Source of the DNA: Magallana gigas
Lineage: Eukaryota
NCBI RefSeq assembly: GCF_963853765.1
Contig: NC_088860.1
Location: 22,072,001 to 22,136,000, forward strand
Reading direction: 5' to 3'
Length of the DNA stretch: 64,000 bases
Below, piece after piece: positions 11,654 through 23,930 of the stretch. Each line of letters begins with the position of its first letter. Positions within the stretch are counted from its first letter, which is position 1. The translations under genes and the position numbers were made by a program. The notes beneath the pieces are model-generated. The model had not been told where the DNA came from, made no database searches, and saw only the letters and a list, made by a program, of their open reading frames with translations.

Positions 11654-12826
11654 TTACAGCTTGAACAACCCTATATAGTTATTTACTTGATTAGATTGAT
11701 CGAGGAAGTTGTGTGCACTCTGGGATAGGGAGCTCGATATCAGGTACCCGCGCTGCAATTCGAACACTCCCGCCAGAAAATTTGTGTGATGCTTGTCGGA
11801 TGTTTTGGAGCCACCAAACTTACTAAACACGAGGTCAACGTCACCCGTCCGCGGCAACAGCGGGTGAAACTTGGTCAGACTCTGATAAAACGTCTCCACG
11901 TAGATGTCTTTGCTATGATCGAAGGTGGTGGAGGAATATATAAAATAGTTCCCGCTGTGCTTTATTTGCAGATGGGTCGCGTTCTGCAGATCTATATCCT
12001 TTGTAAATGCCGTGCCGAGTGAATCGCTAGCTACCCAACGAAGTTTGTTTTCTAAAGAAAAAATAAATTAAAATATGATAATTAGACATATGTATATGTT
12101 AATTAATTACGTTTTTATTTAATTATGAAACAGCTTTAAAAGAAATTAAAACCTCACACAAGAAGCACAGAGCAAGCTAAGGTACATGTAATACTATGCA
12201 GATTTAGCATAGTATTACCAGTAACTTTAATTGTTTTTTCCTTAGCGGAGACACATTATTATTTTTGATGGCCCCTAATCATTTTCTAATTGGAAGGAGG
12301 GGGGTATAAAGTTGTGAAAATATTTAAAAGTGTAAAGTAACTATAACGATAGCACACTTACCCTTTGAGATCGACTTTTTCCGGTCCAAATATAGATGTG
12401 CAGCGCAAGGTCGCTCTCTCCACCAATGAAAAGAATCACTGACTGAATTCGCGTTACCTGTAAAAGGAAAACCGATATTCTATATTTACAGAAACTATAT
12501 CATACCTCTGGTTGCTATAATCATTCTATAATCATTATTTGAACTAGAATTAGATTGATTTTATATTCTGTAAAGATGATTTGCATATAACATACCAATG
12601 TGGTTGTCTTCATTCTGAATCTGTAGAAAATGTAAGAAAATGAAAATAATTATATCAGTTAATTAAACATTAAGTAAGATTTTAAGTAATATTCTCAGAA
12701 GGTTCAGACCTTATAAACACCAATTACTGCAACAGATACATCTATTTTCCTCCTTTTTTCTTCATATAATAACTTAATAAAATGGGGTTTTTTCAGGTTC
12801 TTTAAATTTACATGTATATACACGTG

Positions 12827-12868
<42 letters not shown>

Positions 12869-13598
12869 TTGGGGGGATAGATATGAATATCAGTTTTAGA
12901 TGAGTTTTAAATCTGATATCAAAGTTGTTTTCGTTTGATATTCAGTAAATTAAATTATTCGATTGTAAATGTTCAATTAAAGATCAGTTTCGGTTTCGAA
13001 TCAAAATGCACATGTATGCTCAATTTGTGCCGAGTCACATTTTGTTAATTAAATTAACATTTACTCATATGTTAATTAATAACTTAACTACTGGATTAAA
13101 AAGATTTAAAATTCTTATATTAAAAAAAATCAAATTAACAATTAACGAGAGAGAGAAAAAGAATATAAAGAATGTTGAATAACCAACTTTCGTTTTCGAT
13201 AGTGACTTGATACTATATATACTTACAGCACGGATAAATTCTTGAATGGCCGTGTCCTTTAAACAGCACAATTTATTTTGACGATCCGTCGTATAGATAT
13301 CATCATACAATGTTTCATTCGTATTTACATCTTCACCTAAATAATCGCAATTAAAACAAACAGAACTTTGTAGATCCCCGGCAAGGCTAACGTTGGCTTG
13401 AAGAAGTTTTTGGGCAATATTGGTCGATGGCTTAGGAACATCCTTATTTTCAACGGTTTCCTTATCCAAGGTATTAAAATAAATGGCTAAAACACTAACG
13501 AAGATCGCCAAAAAAATGTTTATTCCGAATGAAAAATACAAACAAGTCTTAGGTGCACAGGAAACCATGTCTGCGGCGCGTTGAGCCTTTTTCTTCAT
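11654..13598 (-). CDS. TNF superfamily ligand, copy 1 (type II membrane protein), 4 exons
   Basis: Exons 13598-13227, 12620-12596, 12458-12363 (approx.), 12051-11654, intron phases 0,1,1. Short cytoplasmic tail, TM helix (LYFSFGINIFLAIFVSVLAIYF), Cys-rich stalk, then a TNF homology domain: WWRERPCAAHLYL...LRW...GNYFIYSSTTF...FLAGVFEL...NYIGLFKL*. Start could also be the Met at about 13568. Confidence 0.9.
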
Positions 13599-16500
13599 GT
13601 CATGAATGATTATGCGTCAATACGAAAGTAGGTTTTTCCATTACATTTTATCTGGGGAAACAGAACAAAAATGAAAGGAAACACATATCTTGGTTGACTT
13701 GTGGGTTTTCACGTAGAATCGCTCTATTGGCCAATTCTATATTTTTTAAAACAAATTTGCTCTGCTTAACTATCAGCATATGATTCAGTTTAGACATAAG
13801 TGAAACTTCAAAAGAAATACACAAATATTATAAAAGAAAGCTTAAAATAGAACTATTAACAGGTATATGTAGAACTATAACTTTAAACCAAATATAGTAG
13901 ATATAGATTTCTTTTTAAAAGAGAGATCTTAACATTCATTGAATAAATGTCAAAATCTTTAAAGAATCAAATGTTTTACCTAGCTATCTTATACAAATGA
14001 ATGAAGGTATAGAAAAGGTACTAATAACTGGATATGTCGCAGTAAATTCACATGTCAAAATAGAGGAGAATGATGGGTCGAATTCAAATAAGATTATTGA
14101 CTACCTTTTTAATCATGGAAAGTAGAACAAATATGTCACCGGTTTTTTTCTGTTTTTAAATTTAATAAATTTTTATAAAAATTCCAAAAACAGTCAATAT
14201 AAAAACAAAACTTCCGCCAAAACCTTTGAATTAAACTATCTGTTACCTTAAGGTAAATCCTGACTTATGCGTAAATTTAGTTTTTCATTTTTTTTTTGGG
14301 GGGGGGGGGGGGTCTCTGATTGAAAGTAAAGTCTATCACGTGGAGAAACATCCACTTACACGCAAAGCAAATAAGGATAATTTTGAATCGACTTGACAAA
14401 GAAATTTTCTTGAAAGCTAAATGACTGGAGCTCATCAAACTCGATGGCTTTATTATATATTGTATGTTGTTGTTTTTTTTGGGGAGTTGATTTTAATCAA
14501 CTCTCCTACGCAGTTACTCTGGCAAACCGAAAGTGAAACAGTGTTTGGACCGAAACACAAATCAACATCGCTGACAACATTTTGTTCTCATCGACAAATT
14601 CGATGTAGTGTATTCTAAAGCCTTGTTTCCAAGGAAACTTATTTATAGATACCTTGTAAATAGTCAGATTTTAAATGGTCGAACAATTTAGATATTTTTT
14701 GTAGTCGTACATTGTATGTATTCCTACGCCAGACTTGTTCAACCTACAAGCAGTGAGTCTCTCTCGCTTGTCGGATATTAACGGAGACAGCCGAACGTCG
14801 ATCTGGTTGAACATGACTAGAGTTCAATATTGCCTGAATCCATACAATTTCTCAGAACTATTTTGATTACTGGCACGTAGTTTGATGGAATTAATTCTTT
14901 GAATATTACACAACAAGATTCATATGGGGTTTTCATATGGGGTTTTCACGAAATTCCTGTCGGAGAATTTATATAATAAAAAATGTGCGTAATTTAAATA
15001 CATATAAGAAAATACTTAGCATGCAAAATAACATATTGTTTATTTTAAAATAAATAATAATCGATAAAAATCAAATCCCGTCAGTACTTCAGTACTTTGA
15101 TTTACATATGTAAGCCCTAAAAGGTTACACTCCAATGTAACATCTTCACAGAATCCTTTTTATTTATAAAAGTCGAAACCCTCTGCTATACTAACAAAGG
15201 AGATAAAAAGAGGACATGAAACATTTAAGATTTATTTAAGGTGTTTTATTTTCTTGTTATCAAAACATTCAGAATTAATAAAGAATCACATTTTTTGTGA
15301 GCAAAAGTACATACCTATAATATTATACATGAACTCTTTTTTTTAACTTAAAAGCAATGCTATAAAACTATAGCTGCCAAAAAAATATGTATTTCCTATT
15401 TCTTTGAAACTTAAAAAGCTACGCTCGTTCTTTTTGGTAAAATTCAGTTTCTTATATTGTATAAAAGTTAAAAGCATATATTGTCCCACTTATCAAATTA
15501 TTTCAAATAATCGAATCATTTATAAGTAAACATTCAAAACTACCTCAAAATATTTAAGTATCCTGAATTTCATTCTGTTTTGTGACATGAACCATAAATA
15601 TTTATATTTTGATATGTAATTTTTAGTGCACATGCAGCCATTTTAGTGGAAAAAAAATCAGCCAAATTATGTATTTTGTCACCATGGTAACGCTTTTTAT
15701 GATATGCATTGATTTTATAATTTTTCTCTATAATTTGAATATTGACCATTTTCTAAATAACACATCGATAGCTCAAATTACTGTCGTTGGTTACAACGTG
15801 CTGTTCCCTCAAATAAGTTTTAATATGTCAAATTTTTAATCCTAAGAATATAACTCACTTTTTCATCCAATCAGCAGTCATTAAATATTCTATCAAGCTT
15901 AAAGAATTTCTTTTAATTTCACAATGACGCAGAACTTTTGATAAGCTAATGAAATTAAAATGGGCTACGTTTCTGGTGAGTTAGATCATATAAGTAAAAG
16001 AACCTGGGGGAATAAGCTGAGGCATATGCCCACAAGTGACCATAACCTTATCACTAGTATGTTTCAAATGACAATCACGCATTTAGTATAATATGTGTAT
16101 TAACTTCAATTATTTTTATTCATGTGCTTACATATCTCCAGAGAATTTATTATGTGCGTGTACATAGAATAAAGAATTCCAATTTTTTGTCTTAAAGTTC
16201 ATAATTTGTACTCCCTCAACAAAGTAACATGTTAATTTTAAAAGATAGTACTAAAGATAACTTATTTATCAAAAACTATAGAATGATTAAGTGCATGTGT
16301 TGAATTTATAGTAACGCAATTTTTACTTTCTTAACGTCAAATGAGTTTTCCGAATTTAAACAAAGTTAAAGATATAACAAAAAAATTACAACACGATTCA
16401 TAGGAATTGAACACCCAATTCAACATACTTATGTTCCATGAACTCCTCGCTAACCGCTACACCACGAAATCACATGTTTCCATGCATTTGAATAACAAAC

Positions 16501-17202
16501 TCAATTTAGTATTGGGCAAACATAATTCGGTCTTTGTCATTTGATGATCATCTTGAAAATTGAAGGAAGAATACTTGCTTTTCACTATAGAGTGGGTCTT
16601 GGTACCATTTTTTTTAAATTAAAAAAAGATAGACGTTTACATGTTTTATCAGTTTACGTCCTAAAAATGGTATGATGACCCACTCTATAAAAAACTGTAG
16701 TCTAAACATTCGATTTCATTAGCATTTTGTTGCTCAATTAGCATATACATTCATTGATGTCTTATATCATTTAGATTAAAAGTCAATTTTTTAAGATTTT
16801 GGCAAAATTGAATAATGATTACATATGCTTAATATATGTAACAAAGGTGATATTTTAAGAAAAAATTGTGGGTTTTTCAAAAGGATTTAAGTGATTTTAT
16901 GCCTCGGCTTATTCCCCCACGTTCTTTACGCGATTAAGAAGGGGCTCGGTCACTTCGCCTCCTCCGCCCCTTCTTAATTGCGTAATGTTTACTCTGTTGC
17001 CGCGGTATATTGGGGACAAAGCAAGAAGAAGTACCTGAACTTGTGTGTGTGTGTGGGGGGGGGGGGGGGGGGGTTCCAATCGATTAAAGTGTATAAAAAC
17101 AGCTTTAAACAAATAAGTAACATTTTTTGTTTACAAAAGTTTAATTCTACTAAAACTAGGTTTAAACTTGAAATTAAGATTAAATTTATGGTTTTATTTA
17201 AA

Positions 17203-17240
<38 letters not shown>

Positions 17241-17731
17241 AATCATCACAGCAGGTTTTCATGTTATTTAACAATGAATCTGGGTTTCAAAACAATTTAT
17301 TCATGATTAAAGCCATATCTTGTCACAGTCGTAAAATTGAATGGATGTTCTTTTTTTTCCCCATTACACTAAATGATTTTTTTAACATCACACAAGATAT
17401 TTGGTTAAACAAACTAATCAACAATACACAAATAATGATACTGATATAGCATACTTTATAGATACTTTTTACATGTATAATGCACACATTTTTAAGACTG
17501 CATTTTATTCAATAAATATAATAATGAAAGGGTTCAACAAAAAGAACATTAAAATAAATGAGAAACCATACAAGGTTGATTTTTGTTATTTGGATGCTAA
17601 TTTGAGCCAATTTTGGCAACAACTTTTGTCAAAAGGTCCAAGTACATAAAAACTTGCCAAAAACATTATTGATATATACGTGTATTTTTTTCAAAACATG
17701 ATAAGTCTTTTTTTCTTTATCTAGAGGTGGT

Positions 17732-19197
17732 TCACGGGTGCAATTTGTATGCACCAATATAACTTTTCAAAACCGCTGACGAGTCCAAGAATTTATGTCC
17801 GCCCTCTGAAAGTTCACTGGAAATTTGGTGATTTTTCATAAGAAAGAATATTCCCGACATGAAAATTGTTTGTTGTTTCTCCAGTGTCAATCCGCTAATT
17901 TTATGAAACACGAGAGACTCGTCTCCCGTGTTTGTCTGTTTAGGGTGGGATTTCCTTAAAATCTGATAAAATGGCGAGATCAGTTCACGTGATCCAAGAT
18001 CGAAGGTTGTTGCAGCATATATATAGTAAAGGCCAACACTGTTCACTTTCATATAAGTTTTGTTGAGAAGTTCAATATCATTAGCAAAAGCTGTTTCCTG
18101 TGAATCGGCAAGCGTCCACTGAAGGTCCTTATCTTTAAAATTGAATATTTGTCTCATGATTAAAATCTACTAGTAATTAATTTCACATTTGAAATGAGAA
18201 GGTAATTGCATTTCTTTATACAATCTATTCTTATACAGATTTTTTTTTAAAAATCGCCAAATAGGAAATAAAGTATAAAGTTAGAAGGACCAAGGTATGC
18301 CAAAATCGGCGTAAGGTCAAAAGTGATCAAAATTTTGTTAAGTACTGTTGCTTTATAACAATTCTACATGGCAAAAATAGTAACTTAACTTTTGAATGAC
18401 TAATTGCACAAACTGCTCTTTCTATTTATAAAAATGTCGATAAAACACTTACCTTTTACAGGAGTATCTTTGTCCATATAAAAATGAGCGGAATTGGGTC
18501 TGTTTCTCCACCAGCCTAGTGAAGTCTTGGTCAGTGAGTTGCTTTCTGGAAGGTAACAGCATAGGTCAAATATTTTACATTAGCTTTCCAAAGGTCGAAT
18601 TCCGTCTCTTTATATTCAATATAATAATCAAAAAACCAGATCCAAATGTTACCACAAAATATAATTTTAAATTTCTTGAAAACTTTTCATAATTCTAAAT
18701 CGAATCATGCAACTGAAATAGAACCCTTACCTTTAAGGTCGTTTATCTACAAAAAGAGGAGAGAAAAATTTGAAATTGATATTAACACTGGTATATATCA
18801 TTATTTCTGATGAGGTAGCATCCACTTAACTTCAATGGGATTTCTCGAGAGACGTTTATCTACTTACCGACTGTAGGAAGTTGCGAATTTCCCCGTCTTT
18901 TAAACAGCATAGCTTGTTTTCACACTCAGTTGTTATAACATCGCTATACAGGGTCTCGTGGGCAAGCACAGTGTCCCCCAGGTAGTCACATGACATACAC
19001 ACAGAATCCTTGGTCAGCCCAATCGCATCTCCACTCACGTTTCTCTTATCCATTAGAGGGGTTTTGCGGTTCCAGAAATTGAGAAAGATAGTCTCCCAAG
19101 GTAAGCCAATCCATGCACTGCCAAGTATAATTATCAATACGTTCCCCACAAATGTTAATGATATCAAGCACTTCTGAAACGGCGAATAGGCTGTCAT
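17732..19197 (-). CDS. TNF superfamily ligand, copy 2, 4 exons
   Basis: Exons 19197-18868, 18746-18731 (16-nt micro-exon), 18545-18453, 18132-17732. TM helix, CDYLG...LCC stalk, WWRNRPNSAHFYM...LQW...GLYYIYAATTF...FMSGIFFL...SYIGAYKLHP*. Confidence 0.9.
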
Positions 19198-19253
19198 CTT
19201 GAATTATCTGATTTTTCTACACGTGTTACTCATTTTTAAACAATCGTTCTCTT

Positions 19254-19289
19254 GGATTTCCCCACACTTGAAATTGGGGGGAAGTTTCC
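19254..19289. promoter_or_regulatory. Pair of NF-kB/Rel-like sites just upstream of TNF copy 2
   Basis: GGATTTCCCC (19254-19263, GGGGAAATCC on the gene strand) and GGGAAGTTTCC (19279-19289), about 60-90 bp upstream of the ATG. Motif match only. Confidence 0.45.
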
Positions 19290-20404
19290 TGTATTGTGGA
19301 AAAGTATGCAGGAAAAACGTCAGAAGTATTTTTAAACCATATACATGTTTGAAATTATCCTAAAATAAATCCATTTTCTAAGTAAAGGAAATATAATTAG
19401 TACTTTGTAATTTGTAGTACTTTAATCGCTCTTGTGATTCTATTTTAAGAAATTGTAATGGAAATGCATGGAAGATAAATAAGATATGAGTTCGGATTGT
19501 TCGGATATGACTATTTTCATTTATTCATTAAAAAGAAACATGATTACAATCACCTTTAACTGAACTAATCACATTGAACAAATACACAAGCATTCTTGTC
19601 TTACTTGATCCCATAGTATTATCAATAAAATGTTGAAAGGTGTAAAAATTGTTTCATATTATGGTTTGATTATATGAAGGATGCGAAAATCACCCCTTTC
19701 TATTCTTTCTTAGAATACGGCAATTCATTGATTAATTTATTGATAAATCTGTTCACAATCAATTAAAAATACACCTTGAACATATTTCGAAAGAACAATT
19801 ATTTATTACTTTTTGATAGACCATTTTTTTTTACATTATGCAAACTATAAACTATCCAGATCTATTCAATGAATCTGAATTTTTTGTCAGGGAAAACCAT
19901 CCTAAAACAAGTATTTCGCAACTATCTTGTAGTATAATTTTTCGATATAACACTTTGATGAAATAATTTCATAATCTACCATCGTTTTAGTAATCATACT
20001 ATACAATTTATTTTTAATATGGTTAATGAATACACTTTTAAAAAAGCATGTGTAGTGATCATCGAATTAACATTTTAAAGAAATTTTTATCAAATAAATG
20101 AGTTAATACATGTAGTTCTGATAAATGCATACAAATTAGTAATTGTTTCCTTGGATTTTTATAAAAACAATATATAAACTATGAAAGGGTTGTATTAATT
20201 TCATCTACATTTGTACCAGTATTTCTTCTTTTAAAACTTGTACATGCATGATACAATGTTTATTCCAACATCTGAAATGTTATGGGTGTCCAGTTGATAT
20301 CCACAGTTGATGTTGCTGTTAGTTAACTACTGATTATTGCCCTGAGTAGAATTTGTGATATGTCACAGTATCTTCCATTACATTTCAACACAATGTGAAA
20401 CCTC

Positions 20405-23400
20405 TTATTCAACTTTATATATTCCGAAGTAATTGGAGAAAGACGATGATACGTCAATTAGGTTCTTGGCGTTCTCCTGAACGTCCACAACAACTTCGTA
20501 CTCTGCTTCCAGATAAACAATTCCATGGAACAAAACAGACTCATGTGGATCCCTTTTATTATTTCTAAATTTTCTAAGTTGAAGTTTTTCAAGGTAAGAA
20601 TTGTTACTGCTTTTCCGCTTCCTTCCTAGAATTACGTTGAAATTTTCACTCTGGGCTGTATAGCCTTGCAGAATCTTTAACGATGAATAAATATAGTATT
20701 TTCCTGCAGCTGAAACACGGATAGTGGTCGAATTGGCCAGGGATATATTGGGAGATTTAAAGGCACTTCCTAGCGGATCAGAAGTCTGCCATCGTACATA
20801 GTTATCTAGATATATAAATAAATGATAACCAAGTTATTAGTATGTTACAATTTATTTCATGTAGTACAACGGGTTAAACACACAAATTCTCGAGCAAATT
20901 ATACCCTCTACTTATATAAAACATATGGCTGAAACACGCAAACAAAACAACCATAAGATTTTATAATTTAAAAGAAAATGGTCAACAATAAAAAAAAAAG
21001 TTAAAACTATTTGTATTCTTAAGATATGCAAATGTCAAATTAAGTGCTGTTTATCATTTGTGAATAAATATCTTTAAGATATTAAATAGTAGTAGTTTAT
21101 TGGCGTGTACATTACATACATTGCCATAGCATACAATTAAACAGTACTTTACAATAATTGTGGGTACAGGTGGGAGGCAGGTTATATAAATATATATAAA
21201 AGGTATAAAGTGGATGAAAAAATATCAAAAAGACCATTAAAATGTAAAATGAATGGCTACTTATCATTTATGAATAAATATTAATAAGATATGCAAATGT
21301 AAAATTAAGTGCTACTTATCATTTGTGAATAAATATTGTAGTTGTTTAAAGTTAACCAGTTTTTATGTTTTGTTTTACAATGTCAAGAAGATGTTATTTC
21401 TCAGAATCAGTCTCCCGAAATAGACTAAATATGGTAATAGTATTTTGAAAAACAAATGAAAATGTCAGATGTAAAATAGTTCATAATTCTTTTTCCAACT
21501 AAACATAATTTGCATGGCACACTAAATATTAAATTCCTCTTTTTGATTTTTTAAAATTTTGATTAATAAACCGTGCCTTTAATTATATACTAGTACAAAT
21601 AATAGAATAAAAGTCCCTTTCATTTGATAATATTTCATAAATAAAACTACATGGTCAAGGGTGATCTAAGGTTGACAATCTAGCTTTCGCAAAATTTAGA
21701 TTCTGGCATCTCATTGCATTGTAAGCCTAGTGTAAACTATTTAGTCTTGTAAACTTCATGTATTGATTGTTTTATACATATTCATGAAAAAAAAAATCAT
21801 AATGATTATTCTTTGGGTTTTTTAACTCAACTATTCTATAAAACACGATTGAATTATGATTGATAATCTAGTATTATATATTGATTTCTCAGGAATATTT
21901 AAGTATTTTGTGAAAATTGCTATTTTTTAAAAATAAAATTTCATTTTTTAATAAAGAAGATGGCCAATTTAACCGGTTAACATCATATAGTCGAGCGGAT
22001 AAGAAGCTGAATAAAAGAAATTATACCTGAAGATTAAATAGTTTTTTAATTCAAAATACGACGTCAGTTATTTTCTATATCAAGACATCGACTTTTAGGG
22101 TTTCGATTACCAACTGGTGTATGCGTTCCAAAATCTATTTTAAAGTGTTGTATTTGTTCTATACTTCTGCATTGATCTAATAAAATTACAAGAAAGTACA
22201 CATGTACAGCGTAAAAAGCAAATATGTATTTTTAAAAGTACAAATTTCAATAATGAAGAAATTATTTGAATGCCAAACATAATATTTTAGAAAACTTATA
22301 GAAGTGTGTACACTTAATAAATAGATCGCATTTACGCTTTAAGCTTTTTAACTTGAGGGTTCGATGCAATAAAAATTGCGATATTGTTTCTATTTCCTTA
22401 GTGTTATTTAAATTCAAACCGGTTATAGTTAGAAATTTTGATGAGCATAATTTTTTATTTATTAAAAAAGATATTTTCAGGAGACAGAATGGTCAACAAA
22501 TTACTTATCAATTATACTTTAGGCTATTAAAAAAATAATAATTTTAGCCATTAAAATTCATTAAAAAAATATTCAGATCTAAAATTTGAATACTTTTACA
22601 CCTTTATCTCTTTGTCAAAAGAAATAATATAGTATAAAACGGACAAGACTATCCGACCCTTTTAAATGTAACATTATTTGTTGCGATTAATTCAATATAC
22701 ATTCGCCCATGTCTTTTAACTCTTGTACATTCTATTAAAAGTCTGAATACTAATTAAAACTTTTGAATAACAATCATGTAGAAAATATATTCTCTGATTC
22801 TCTGAATAGATCAGTTTCACTAAAGTCATAACGTCTACATTTTCATGTTTCTATTCCTATATTATTTTATGCGAGTCCAACAATTTTTCATCTCTCTCTC
22901 TCTCTCTCTCTCAAATTCAATTTTCACAATAACAGAATTGTACAAATTTATAAAATTAGTAATAATTTGTAAAGACTTAATGATATGCATATGCTTTTAC
23001 AAACGTTTGTATCAGATATACATGTGTATATGGTTAAATATCATGTAGAATTTTAAAAAAAATAGTTTGTATACAATAACATACCTTTAGACAGAGGTTT
23101 ACTGGTGTCGATATATAGATGAGCAGCATTTTCTCTATTTCTCCAAGTAATTAACGAGTCTTTCAAAGATGACATATCATCACTTATTTCTGAATATTAA
23201 AAAATATATATATGAATAAAGGCTGCTTGATTAAGTACAACCACGTTCGTACAACAAAGTTTAATATTTTATGACTCATGTTTGAAGATCCCTTGTACCA
23301 TTAACATTAGCTTCTATTATTTTTCTCATTTTATACTAAAATTTCGTTACATGATATAATCTTTAATACATGTATAATATTATATTTTTGCATTATTATT

Positions 23401-23930
23401 AATCTTTTTTCTTTTATAATTTGTTCAAGTATAATGGACAGTCATTATCCTCACCATTTAAGTTTCTGACTTTATTTGCCTGAAATATAATGGGGGAAAT
23501 TATCAATATTAAAATTTCTAATGTAAAAATAAAAATAACATAGATTAAAATGAATTCATATTGATTCTATAGTTTATCATGATAAATATCTAATTTGTAA
23601 GGAAGAGAGATCTACCGCTGCAAAAATGAATCCTTGAAGCACTGTGTCATTGTAACAGCAAAGACGGTGTTCGTTGCCGCAATTCACCTGCAAAACCTCC
23701 GTGTATAACGTGTTCGACGTAAACAGGCTTTCACCCAAATAATCACAGGACACACAGAATCCATTGTTTGTTGCTAACGTGGACGTAAGACGCGCCTCCT
23801 GAACCACGGGATTTTCCTTGGTAGAAGTCATTCCAGGATAGAGGAAGATGTACATTCCGCTAAAGACGATCCCAAGAATTACATTGACGACCAGAGAAAT
23901 CGAAAGAGCGGTTGGAAACGTACTCTCCAT
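20405..23930 (-). CDS. TNF superfamily ligand, copy 3, 4 exons
   Basis: Exons 23930-23616, 23479-23455, 23189-23085, 20805-20405, phases 0,1,1. The last exon has no ATG and is absent from the ORF track: NYVRWQTSDPLGSAF...AGKYYIYSSL...LFHGIVYL...NYFGIYKVE*. Confidence 0.88.

Follow-up and report, generated by a model that had tools for sequence, protein, structure and literature searches.

Three genes for ligands of the TNF family lie in a 64,000-nt stretch of the Magallana gigas genome (positions 22,072,001–22,136,000 of contig NC_088860.1, here C8; we call this stretch the window, and positions given without a contig name are counted from its first nucleotide), and the first exon of each encodes a short cysteine-rich module, CxxCDYLG...TLY...LCC, that appears to be an undescribed mini-domain of mollusc TNF ligands. 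The module is some 45–50 residues long, would lie outside the cell, after a variable juxtamembrane spacer and ahead of the TNF homology domain, and is predicted to fold into three short strands and a helix. We propose that it acts as a disulfide-stapled pedestal for the TNF domain, and we give the whole statement, mini-domain and pedestal together, a probability of about 0.5. Taken separately, the existence of a genuine conserved domain confined to TNF ligands is very probable, and the pedestal mechanism falls a shade short of even odds.

The minus strand carries the three genes in head-to-tail order, no more than 12 kb apart, in an intron-bearing, AT-rich genome (~30% GC; 564 Mb in 29 contigs). 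All three first exons share one layout, in which a short cytoplasmic tail is followed by a membrane helix, a variable spacer, the cysteine motif and a short helix, and all three finish at a phase-0 GT donor in the equivalent place, 12–13 codons after the motif. By translation, the module occupies 13254..13358 in gene 1 (35 codons, CFNCDYLG...TLY...LCCLKD), 18895..18999 in gene 2 (CMSCDYLG...TLY...LCCLKD) and 23646..23756 in gene 3 (37 codons, including a two-residue insertion, CVSCDYLG...TLY...LCCYND), all on the minus strand, with the first Cys codons beginning at 13358, 18999 and 23756, respectively. The elements C, C, DYLG, TLY, LCC and D are invariant in these three copies. The first-pass annotation, which was made from the nucleotide letters, had quoted one peptide string from each gene, and we found all three letter for letter in minus-strand open reading frames (ORFs), in exon 1 after the membrane helix; the span that it gave, 13227–23770, runs from the end of gene 1 exon 1 to just upstream of the gene 3 motif. 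Its statement that the module is present in all three TNF ligands was right for the window (3/3) but drew the scope too narrowly, in that we detected seven genes with the DYLG/TLY form in this genome, ten more with a bare frame of membrane helix followed by CxxC...CC, and carriers extending from Bivalvia to a gastropod. It had also claimed that the module is better conserved than the TNF domain, and this was borne out both within and beyond the window.

Between the window paralogues, pairwise identity was 63/41/46% over the module and 43/32/28% over the TNF domain, with 13–15% over the spacer and 15–21% over the linker. Over 17 non-redundant full-length relatives the corresponding values were 42.9% for the module and 30.9% for the TNF domain, next to 8.6% for the spacer, 18.4% for the helix that follows the module and 10.4% for the linker. 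When 20 full-length proteins from oysters to abalone were aligned, twelve columns were invariant and the module accounted for six of them (four Cys, a Gly and a Leu); the four Cys were invariant across all 46 aligned family sequences. The consensus reads C-x-x-C-D-[YH]-L-G-x2-[VI]-x3-[DE]-T-L-[YF]-x2-I-x4-[CN]-G-x-[KR]-[LIM]-C-C and is followed by an amphipathic helix. The distance from the second Cys to the CC pair was 24–28 residues with a mode of 26 (51 distinct modules). Within this same set, 27 modules had four Cys and 23 had a fifth, five residues before CC. Among 58 distinct modules the mean net charge was -2.6, and 26 held an N-glycosylation sequon, mostly in the loop before T-L-Y. The ectodomain of Haliotis contains exactly four Cys in total, so the four Cys can pair among themselves. 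As a separate observation, gene 1 and its close relatives have no fifth module Cys but carry, where the TNF domain begins, a single Cys within R-P-C-A-A-H-L-Y (residue 150 of the database protein P0003, window ~12400), and their ectodomain Cys count therefore stays odd.

A search of the 564 Mb genome with a profile of the three window sequences recovered the window copies at E ~1e-27 to 1e-29. As a strand control, we counted the combination of membrane helix and CxxC...CC, which occurred 10 times in sense and 0 times in antisense over 110 kb, and 3 times on the minus and 0 times on the plus strand in the window. These E-values and the strand control together exclude chance as the source of the pattern.

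The profile search for taxonomic range and for carriers outside the TNF ligands, which the first-pass annotation had recommended, was run with a seven-copy profile against 1.84 billion representative proteins (E <= 1e-3). It returned 49 clusters, 24 of them at E <= 1e-10, and the full C-x-x-C ... G ... T-[LF]-[YF] ... CC pattern was present in 45 of the 49; P0024 and P0058 held a truncated or partial motif. All 22 full-length carriers that we inspected end in a TNF domain and the other clusters are exon-1 fragments called on genomic contigs. Among the inspected proteins of the 49 clusters there was no carrier clearly lacking a TNF domain. The named sources were molluscs throughout, with many further clusters coming from Logan, ENA or JGI assemblies that bear no species name. 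They comprised oysters (Saccostrea cucullata, Ostrea edulis with two proteins, and Crassostrea virginica), mussels (Mytilus californianus and M. coruscus), a pearl oyster (Pinctada imbricata, two proteins), scallops (Pecten maximus, Mizuhopecten yessoensis with three proteins, and Ylistrum balloti), freshwater mussels (Sinanodonta woodiana and Potamilus streckersoni) and a gastropod, Haliotis asinina, whose protein is labelled “TNF ligand superfamily member 6-like.” The closest named homologues were those of Saccostrea cucullata (58% identity) and Ostrea edulis (54%). Word-indexed protein searches, which have limited reach, gave near-identical Logan proteins only when queried with exon 1, and three more scallop proteins when queried with the full-length alignment. 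Two of the matches to the seven-copy profile were left out of further use. The top match, P0012 (373 amino acids), is an ORF with one complete module and about five tandem copies of its second half (T-L-Y ... C-G-H-R-I-C-C ...) but with no TNF domain, and may represent an exon-repeat array, an assembly artefact or intron read-through; P0046 (2011 amino acids), with 12 partial matches to profile positions 3–17, has no CxxC...CC motif and was set aside as probably spurious.

In this genome, the DYLG/TLY form occurs in seven copies, all on C8 (three-sequence profile, E 1e-29 to 1e-8): the three in the window, one at 23.90 Mb and three at 17.70–17.73 Mb. Each of the seven lies upstream of TNF-domain exons and finishes at the equivalent phase-0 donor. 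A genome scan with PF00229 gave 22 TNF-domain exon matches, likewise all on C8, which fall into clusters at 5.1–5.3, 17.7, 19.9–20.04 (eight copies), 22.08–22.09, 23.9–24.02, 32.7 and 34.93–34.94 Mb. We scanned the DNA upstream of the 15 TNF-domain exons that have no DYLG/TLY motif, and for ten of these genes found, on the gene strand, an exon-1-like ORF with a membrane helix, 18–35 residues, CxxC, 24–30 residues and CC. A C-S-P-C ... CC type accounted for seven of the ten, all in the 19.9–20.04 Mb cluster, and the remaining frames were single types at 34.94, 24.02 and 5.27 Mb. Two paralogues had variant stalks (C8:34,926,941–34,931,500 and C8:24,008,900–24,017,273), of which one had only two Cys approximately 20 residues apart and then a helix, and the other a shortened CxxC-x7-CC with extra Cys. 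In a profile comparison with hhalign, the DYLG family and the other frames aligned CxxC on CxxC and CC on CC (probability 38%, E 3.3e-4). A common origin of the DYLG form and the other oyster frames is likely on the grounds of position and gene structure, if still unproven. The DYLG/TLY form is thus the best-conserved subfamily version, that of the oyster “FasL-like” group, of a design found in at least 17–18 of the ~22 TNF ligand genes of this genome.

We found no Pfam family for the module: across 46 module segments the best E-value was 0.005, and no family matched more than two members. The wider homologues kept all four Cys, so neither of the outcomes that the first-pass annotation had named as refuting its claim came about. 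With the exon 1 products as queries, Pfam returned only unrelated sub-threshold matches, and the module profile produced a single chance match (E 1.2) among PDB sequences. A full-text literature search for the string CDYLG gave no paper. Descriptions of a stalk or of its cysteines were likewise absent from the mollusc TNF literature that was searched, which did not extend to subscription papers such as the original abalone FasL report and the C. gigas TNF repertoire. The paper on Crassostrea hongkongensis ChFasL limits its account of the protein's features to the membrane helix, a glycosylation site and the TNF domain, contains none of the words “cysteine,” “disulfide” and “conserved,” and reports very low homology outside the membrane and TNF regions (PMC10585096). 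No ligand stalk motif is mentioned in the papers on Magallana gigas TNF-3 (PMC11869874) and pearl oyster PmTNF (PMC12367993), or in a preprint surveying invertebrate TNFs and their receptors (10.1101/2024.07.27.603686). One motif-bearing protein has already been deposited, the O. edulis “Fas ligand-like protein” V9HX39, so the module is present in databases but undescribed in the searchable literature and in Pfam, as the first-pass annotation had supposed. We also considered a Cys-rich domain of the TNFR or Grindelwald type fused to the ligand, and dropped it because the Grindelwald pattern is CXXCXXXC (10.1101/2024.07.27.603686) as against CxxC-x24-28-CC here, and because there was no Pfam TNFR match.

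The predicted structure points to a small self-contained fold. We modelled the gene 1 ectodomain (P0003 residues 66–296, 231 residues) with AlphaFold2 (AF2) and the 46-sequence family alignment, and obtained a mean predicted local distance difference test score (pLDDT) of 90.7 and a predicted template modelling score (pTM) of 0.84. By part, pLDDT was 84–91 over the module (model residues 11–60), 68 over the linker (61–70) and 94–98 over the TNF domain. The pTM of 0.84 over 231 residues suggests that the module is confidently placed against the TNF domain in this model. When the module was modelled alone (P0003 residues 69–128), the same β-β-β-α elements appeared as in the ectodomain, with pLDDT 83.4 and pTM 0.62. 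In the numbering of this shorter model they are a strand at 12–15 that holds CxxC, two short turns, a strand at 32–35, a strand at 41–45 that holds CC, and a helix at 48–58; since it folds confidently in isolation, the module is predicted to be an autonomous monomeric fold.

The modelled TNF domain is a β-jelly-roll that matched TNF, RANKL, TL1A, FasL, LIGHT and LT-alpha in Foldseek with a probability of 1.00. Vertebrate models did not align over the module, in line with the earlier remark that no named domain like it is known in vertebrate TNF ligands: the Cys part (residues 11–50) received no vertebrate coverage, as the 30 reviewed-UniProt matches listed all start at model residue 53 or later, in the helix and TNF domain. 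The module model had no Foldseek match in the PDB at E <= 1e-3, and its best Z was 3.1 in a VIA-align comparison with 48,161 PDB representative chains. Among 2.3 million AlphaFold DB clusters it matched only a Mizuhopecten member of its own family (root-mean-square deviation (rmsd) 2.4 Å over 45 residues), with E > 0.6 for every other entry. A search of the ESM Atlas by shape placed a cluster of mollusc TNF homology domains from the module's own family on top and generic β/α entries below it, and a search by features (residues 72–128) gave no usable match. Short models make for weak fold searches, and these results are accordingly to be read as no known fold found rather than as a new fold proven. 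The small fold that the first-pass annotation had envisaged thus has a predicted counterpart, with no significant structural match outside its own family.

We consider that in this predicted fold the CxxC of strand 1 and the vicinal CC of strand 3, which sit on neighbouring strands, would form two intradomain disulfides that staple it. The resulting rigid, acidic pedestal and the helix after it would hold the N-terminal end of each TNF domain fixed above the membrane, and would stabilise or pre-organise the signalling trimer, a role that in vertebrate FasL and TRAIL is attributed to the unstructured stalk. The pedestal may also keep shed ligand active. Several observations weigh against this reading. 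The fifth Cys in 23/51 modules and the odd Cys count of most ectodomains would fit inter-chain bonding, metal binding or a free thiol, and CxxC and CC pairs also characterise inter-chain disulfide rings and zinc sites. AF2 models neither metals nor inter-chain bonds, and ESMFold2, given three copies of the isolated module with no alignment, returned pLDDT 39–41 and a score of 0.00, which speaks neither for nor against self-association. The homology of the DYLG form with the frames of the other paralogues is weakly supported (hhalign probability 38%). A wider version of the proposal, in which the module founds a new autonomously folding domain family of early molluscan or earlier lophotrochozoan origin, serves as a built-in, disulfide-locked brace or cross-link of the trimer that keeps shed ligand active (vertebrate FasL and TRAIL reach this only when bound to the membrane), and has its divergent ancestral form in the looser frame of membrane helix and CxxC...CC of the other oyster TNF paralogues, is conceivable, though we would lean against it.

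The same cysteines could instead act between chains, with the CxxC and CC pairs of three chains forming inter-chain disulfide rings at either end of a short three-chain stretch and so locking trimers covalently, or with the fifth Cys linking trimers into higher oligomers. TNF ligands are obligate trimers and the module sits just below the trimerising domain, an amphipathic helix follows CC, and a fifth, unpaired Cys together with frequently odd ectodomain counts would suit such a role. Inter-chain rings of the CxxC type are used by fibrinogen, COMP and thrombospondin. In the CTRP/adiponectin family, which is structurally related to TNF ligands, N-terminal Cys drive oligomerisation (PMC9952994). 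We nevertheless regard a covalent cross-linker as unlikely, because the AF2 model is a compact monomer with the CxxC and CC strands in one small sheet, not the extended geometry expected of inter-chain rings, and because the Haliotis ectodomain manages with only the four Cys; the ESMFold2 homotrimer prediction gave it no support, and we do not count this as contrary evidence. More improbable still is a zinc knuckle, in which the four Cys, joined in many members by the Cys and His of C-G-H-[RK]-x-C-C, would bind a metal that stabilises the fold or the trimer. A CxxC with a second Cys pair ~26 residues on is a classic zinc-ribbon-like spacing, position 28 of the 32-residue class is most often occupied by His, and TRAIL itself needs a Cys-bound zinc for trimer stability (Cys230, within the TNF domain; PMC6521207). 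Against this, the module of a type II protein would face the outside of the cell, and Cys pairs there are as a rule oxidised; a vicinal CC pair is badly suited to bidentate zinc binding; neither the His nor the fifth Cys is invariant; and the Pfam RING and zinc-ribbon models that lend the idea some weak, sub-threshold support match only 1–2 of 46 members each, at E 0.005–0.24, far below their cut-offs.

A different function altogether would be that of a binding domain rather than a brace, one that docks a co-receptor, a matrix or glycan component or a sheddase, or that masks the receptor site until shedding. The surface-type conservation of D-Y-L-G and [DE]-T-L-Y exceeds what four Cys would need, the module is acidic, and DYLG/TLY is specific to a subfamily while the Cys frame is widespread, the pattern to be expected of loops with subfamily-specific recognition. 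The conserved aromatic and aliphatic positions may equally be the hydrophobic core of a very small fold, though, and no partner is known or predicted; moreover, no inspected protein carried the module without a TNF domain, which speaks against a portable binding module spread by shuffling, and we think the binding role quite improbable. That the conservation does not act on the protein, and comes instead from tandem copies having recently converted one another or from an element in the nucleotide sequence of exon 1, is suggested by the three genes being tandem paralogues within 12 kb, but its chances are negligible. The same residues are kept in unionid mussels, scallops and abalone, the adjoining spacer of the same exon is only 9–15% identical, and the paralogues at 17.7 and 23.9 Mb keep the motif; on this cross-species pattern we rejected it. 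We retain the stapled pedestal as the working interpretation of the module.

The module sits within three real genes, each with an intact spliced ORF that encodes a membrane helix and a PF00229 domain. We derived the exon boundaries from peptide locations (tblastn), splice contexts and transcripts; all exons are on the minus strand. Gene 1 has four exons. Exon 1 (13227..13598; ORF and donor context) holds the start codon, membrane helix, spacer, Cys module and helix, exon 2 is a 25-nt micro-exon in the linker (12596..12620; peptide location and AG/GT context), exon 3 encodes linker, the WWRxR signature and the start of the TNF homology domain (12363..12457; tblastn and splice context), and exon 4 carries the TNF homology domain through to the stop codon (11654..12052; tblastn, and PF00229 at 41.5 bits at C8:22083657-22084043). 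The spliced ORF encodes 296 amino acids and, bar a few residues, its product is the database protein P0003 (296 amino acids). P0003 derives from a contig of 1071 nt; the gene spans 1945 nt in the genome, and P0003 is thus the product of a spliced transcript.

For gene 2, exon 1 (18868..19197) encodes the membrane helix, spacer, Cys module and helix and is backed by its ORF and by contigs from three RNA runs; the middle exon (18453..18554, the 5′ boundary being good to +/- a few bases; RNA joints and tblastn) encodes the linker, WWRNR and the start of the TNF domain; and the last exon (17732..18132) encodes the TNF homology domain and stop (PF00229 E 8.2e-9, 35.9 bits; joint at 18132). Both introns were spliced in three RNA-type runs (X12, X13 and X6), with joints 18132>18453 and 18554>18864. 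At the joint of intron 1 (18554–18864), three transcript letters fit neither side and the reference has no canonical AG, while the transcript across 18864/18554 remains in frame; this oddity may reflect an allele difference, a tiny exon or an alignment artefact. Given the transcript product of gene 1 and the spliced runs of gene 2, TNF genes of the window are expressed.

Gene 3 again has four exons, its spliced ORF is intact and encodes 280 amino acids, and its product parallels a database protein of 282 amino acids, P0016. Exon 1 (23619..23930; ORF and donor context) encodes the membrane helix, spacer, Cys module and helix, exon 2 is a 25-nt micro-exon (23455..23479; splice context), exon 3 encodes the linker and the start of the TNF domain (23085..23189; tblastn and splice context), and exon 4 encodes the TNF homology domain and stop (20405..20805; tblastn, and PF00229 at 42.8 bits at C8:22092411-22092794). 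A 25-nt micro-exon thus stands between exon 1 and the WWRxR exon in genes 1 and 3, and none was seen in gene 2 transcripts. The gene 3 TNF domain is the most diverged of the three (28–32% identity to the others) and has lost the H-P-x-L-P-x-x-G that genes 1 and 2 keep, and despite this divergence its Cys module is still 41–46% identical to theirs. All three TNF domains exceed the PF00229 cut-off of 23 bits (41.5, 35.2 and 42.8 bits for genes 1, 2 and 3 in the genome scan). With a hydrophobic helix near the N-terminus of the exon 1 products and the TNF homology domain in the last exon, the encoded proteins would have a type II topology. We also noted a second signature before the first TNF-domain strand, W-W-R-x-R-x2-[AS]-A-H-L-Y (P0003 residues 144–153 and homologues), that is present in all three window genes; W145, R148 and A152 are at least 90% conserved and H153 is invariant, and AF2 predicts short helices here with pLDDT ~90.

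In work on aquaculture diseases, oyster “FasL” and TNF genes are used as markers of immunity and apoptosis. The TNF ligand families of molluscs have undergone large expansions, with at least 22 TNF-domain exons in this genome and up to 27 paralogues reported for one mollusc species (10.1101/2024.07.27.603686). The papers covered here describe these proteins as a transmembrane helix plus a TNF domain, and the most conserved part of one large subfamily is an unannotated third domain, which merits its own Pfam or InterPro model. Should this domain brace or cross-link the trimer, it would explain an invertebrate answer to the “soluble trimer is weak” problem of FasL and TRAIL, would supply ligand engineering with a compact natural module for fixing trimers, and would provide a sequence signature with which to sort mollusc TNF paralogues.

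Set beside known systems, the module has several partial counterparts. Plant defensins, which are small Cys-rich folds of β-strands and a helix, were the only recurrent Cys-rich entries in the PDB search (Z 2.2–3.0, rmsd 2.2–2.6 Å, 37–39 residues), but they differ in element order and Cys pattern and their Z lies far below noise, the best Z for unrelated models being typically 7–8; we do not hold them to be related, and on the Z of 2.2–3.0 in that wide search we dropped a defensin-like fold. CTRPs and adiponectin resemble the mollusc proteins in having conserved Cys N-terminal to a trimeric TNF-like jelly-roll head, and there these Cys build higher oligomers through disulfides (PMC9952994). 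They differ in being secreted, in having a collagen stalk and in that their Cys region is not a predicted βββα unit, and we detected no sequence similarity between them and the module; the resemblance would thus be functional only.

The stalks of vertebrate FasL (CD95L) and TRAIL occupy the same place as the mollusc module, between the membrane helix and the TNF homology domain, but we detected no sequence or Pfam relation between the two. As a lead only, the stalks of vertebrate TRAIL and RANKL may have two Cys followed by an amphipathic helix. According to reviews, the FasL and TRAIL stalks hold the N-terminus of the TNF homology domain in place and raise activity; when the stalk is lost on shedding, signalling weakens, and artificial trimerisation tags restore it (PMC12219679; PMC6521207). 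The relation of the mollusc ligands to vertebrate FasL in particular is carried by database names (“Fas ligand-like,” “TNFSF6-like”); by structure, TNF, RANKL, TL1A, FasL and LIGHT fall in the same narrow range of scores.

The closest counterparts are other mollusc proteins. Ostrea edulis V9HX39 (“Fas ligand-like”) shares 54% identity with the gene 1 product, and its copy of the motif reads CFSCDYLG...TLY...LCCIKD. Crassostrea hongkongensis ChFasL, which we compared by its published description and not by sequence, has 287 amino acids with a membrane helix at 9–31 and a TNF domain at 140–286, and its authors place it closest to O. edulis FasL (PMC10585096). The published oyster “FasL” proteins belong to the same family as the TNF ligands of the window, and what these genes encode is not a new kind of system but TNF ligands with an unannotated, lineage-specific accessory domain.

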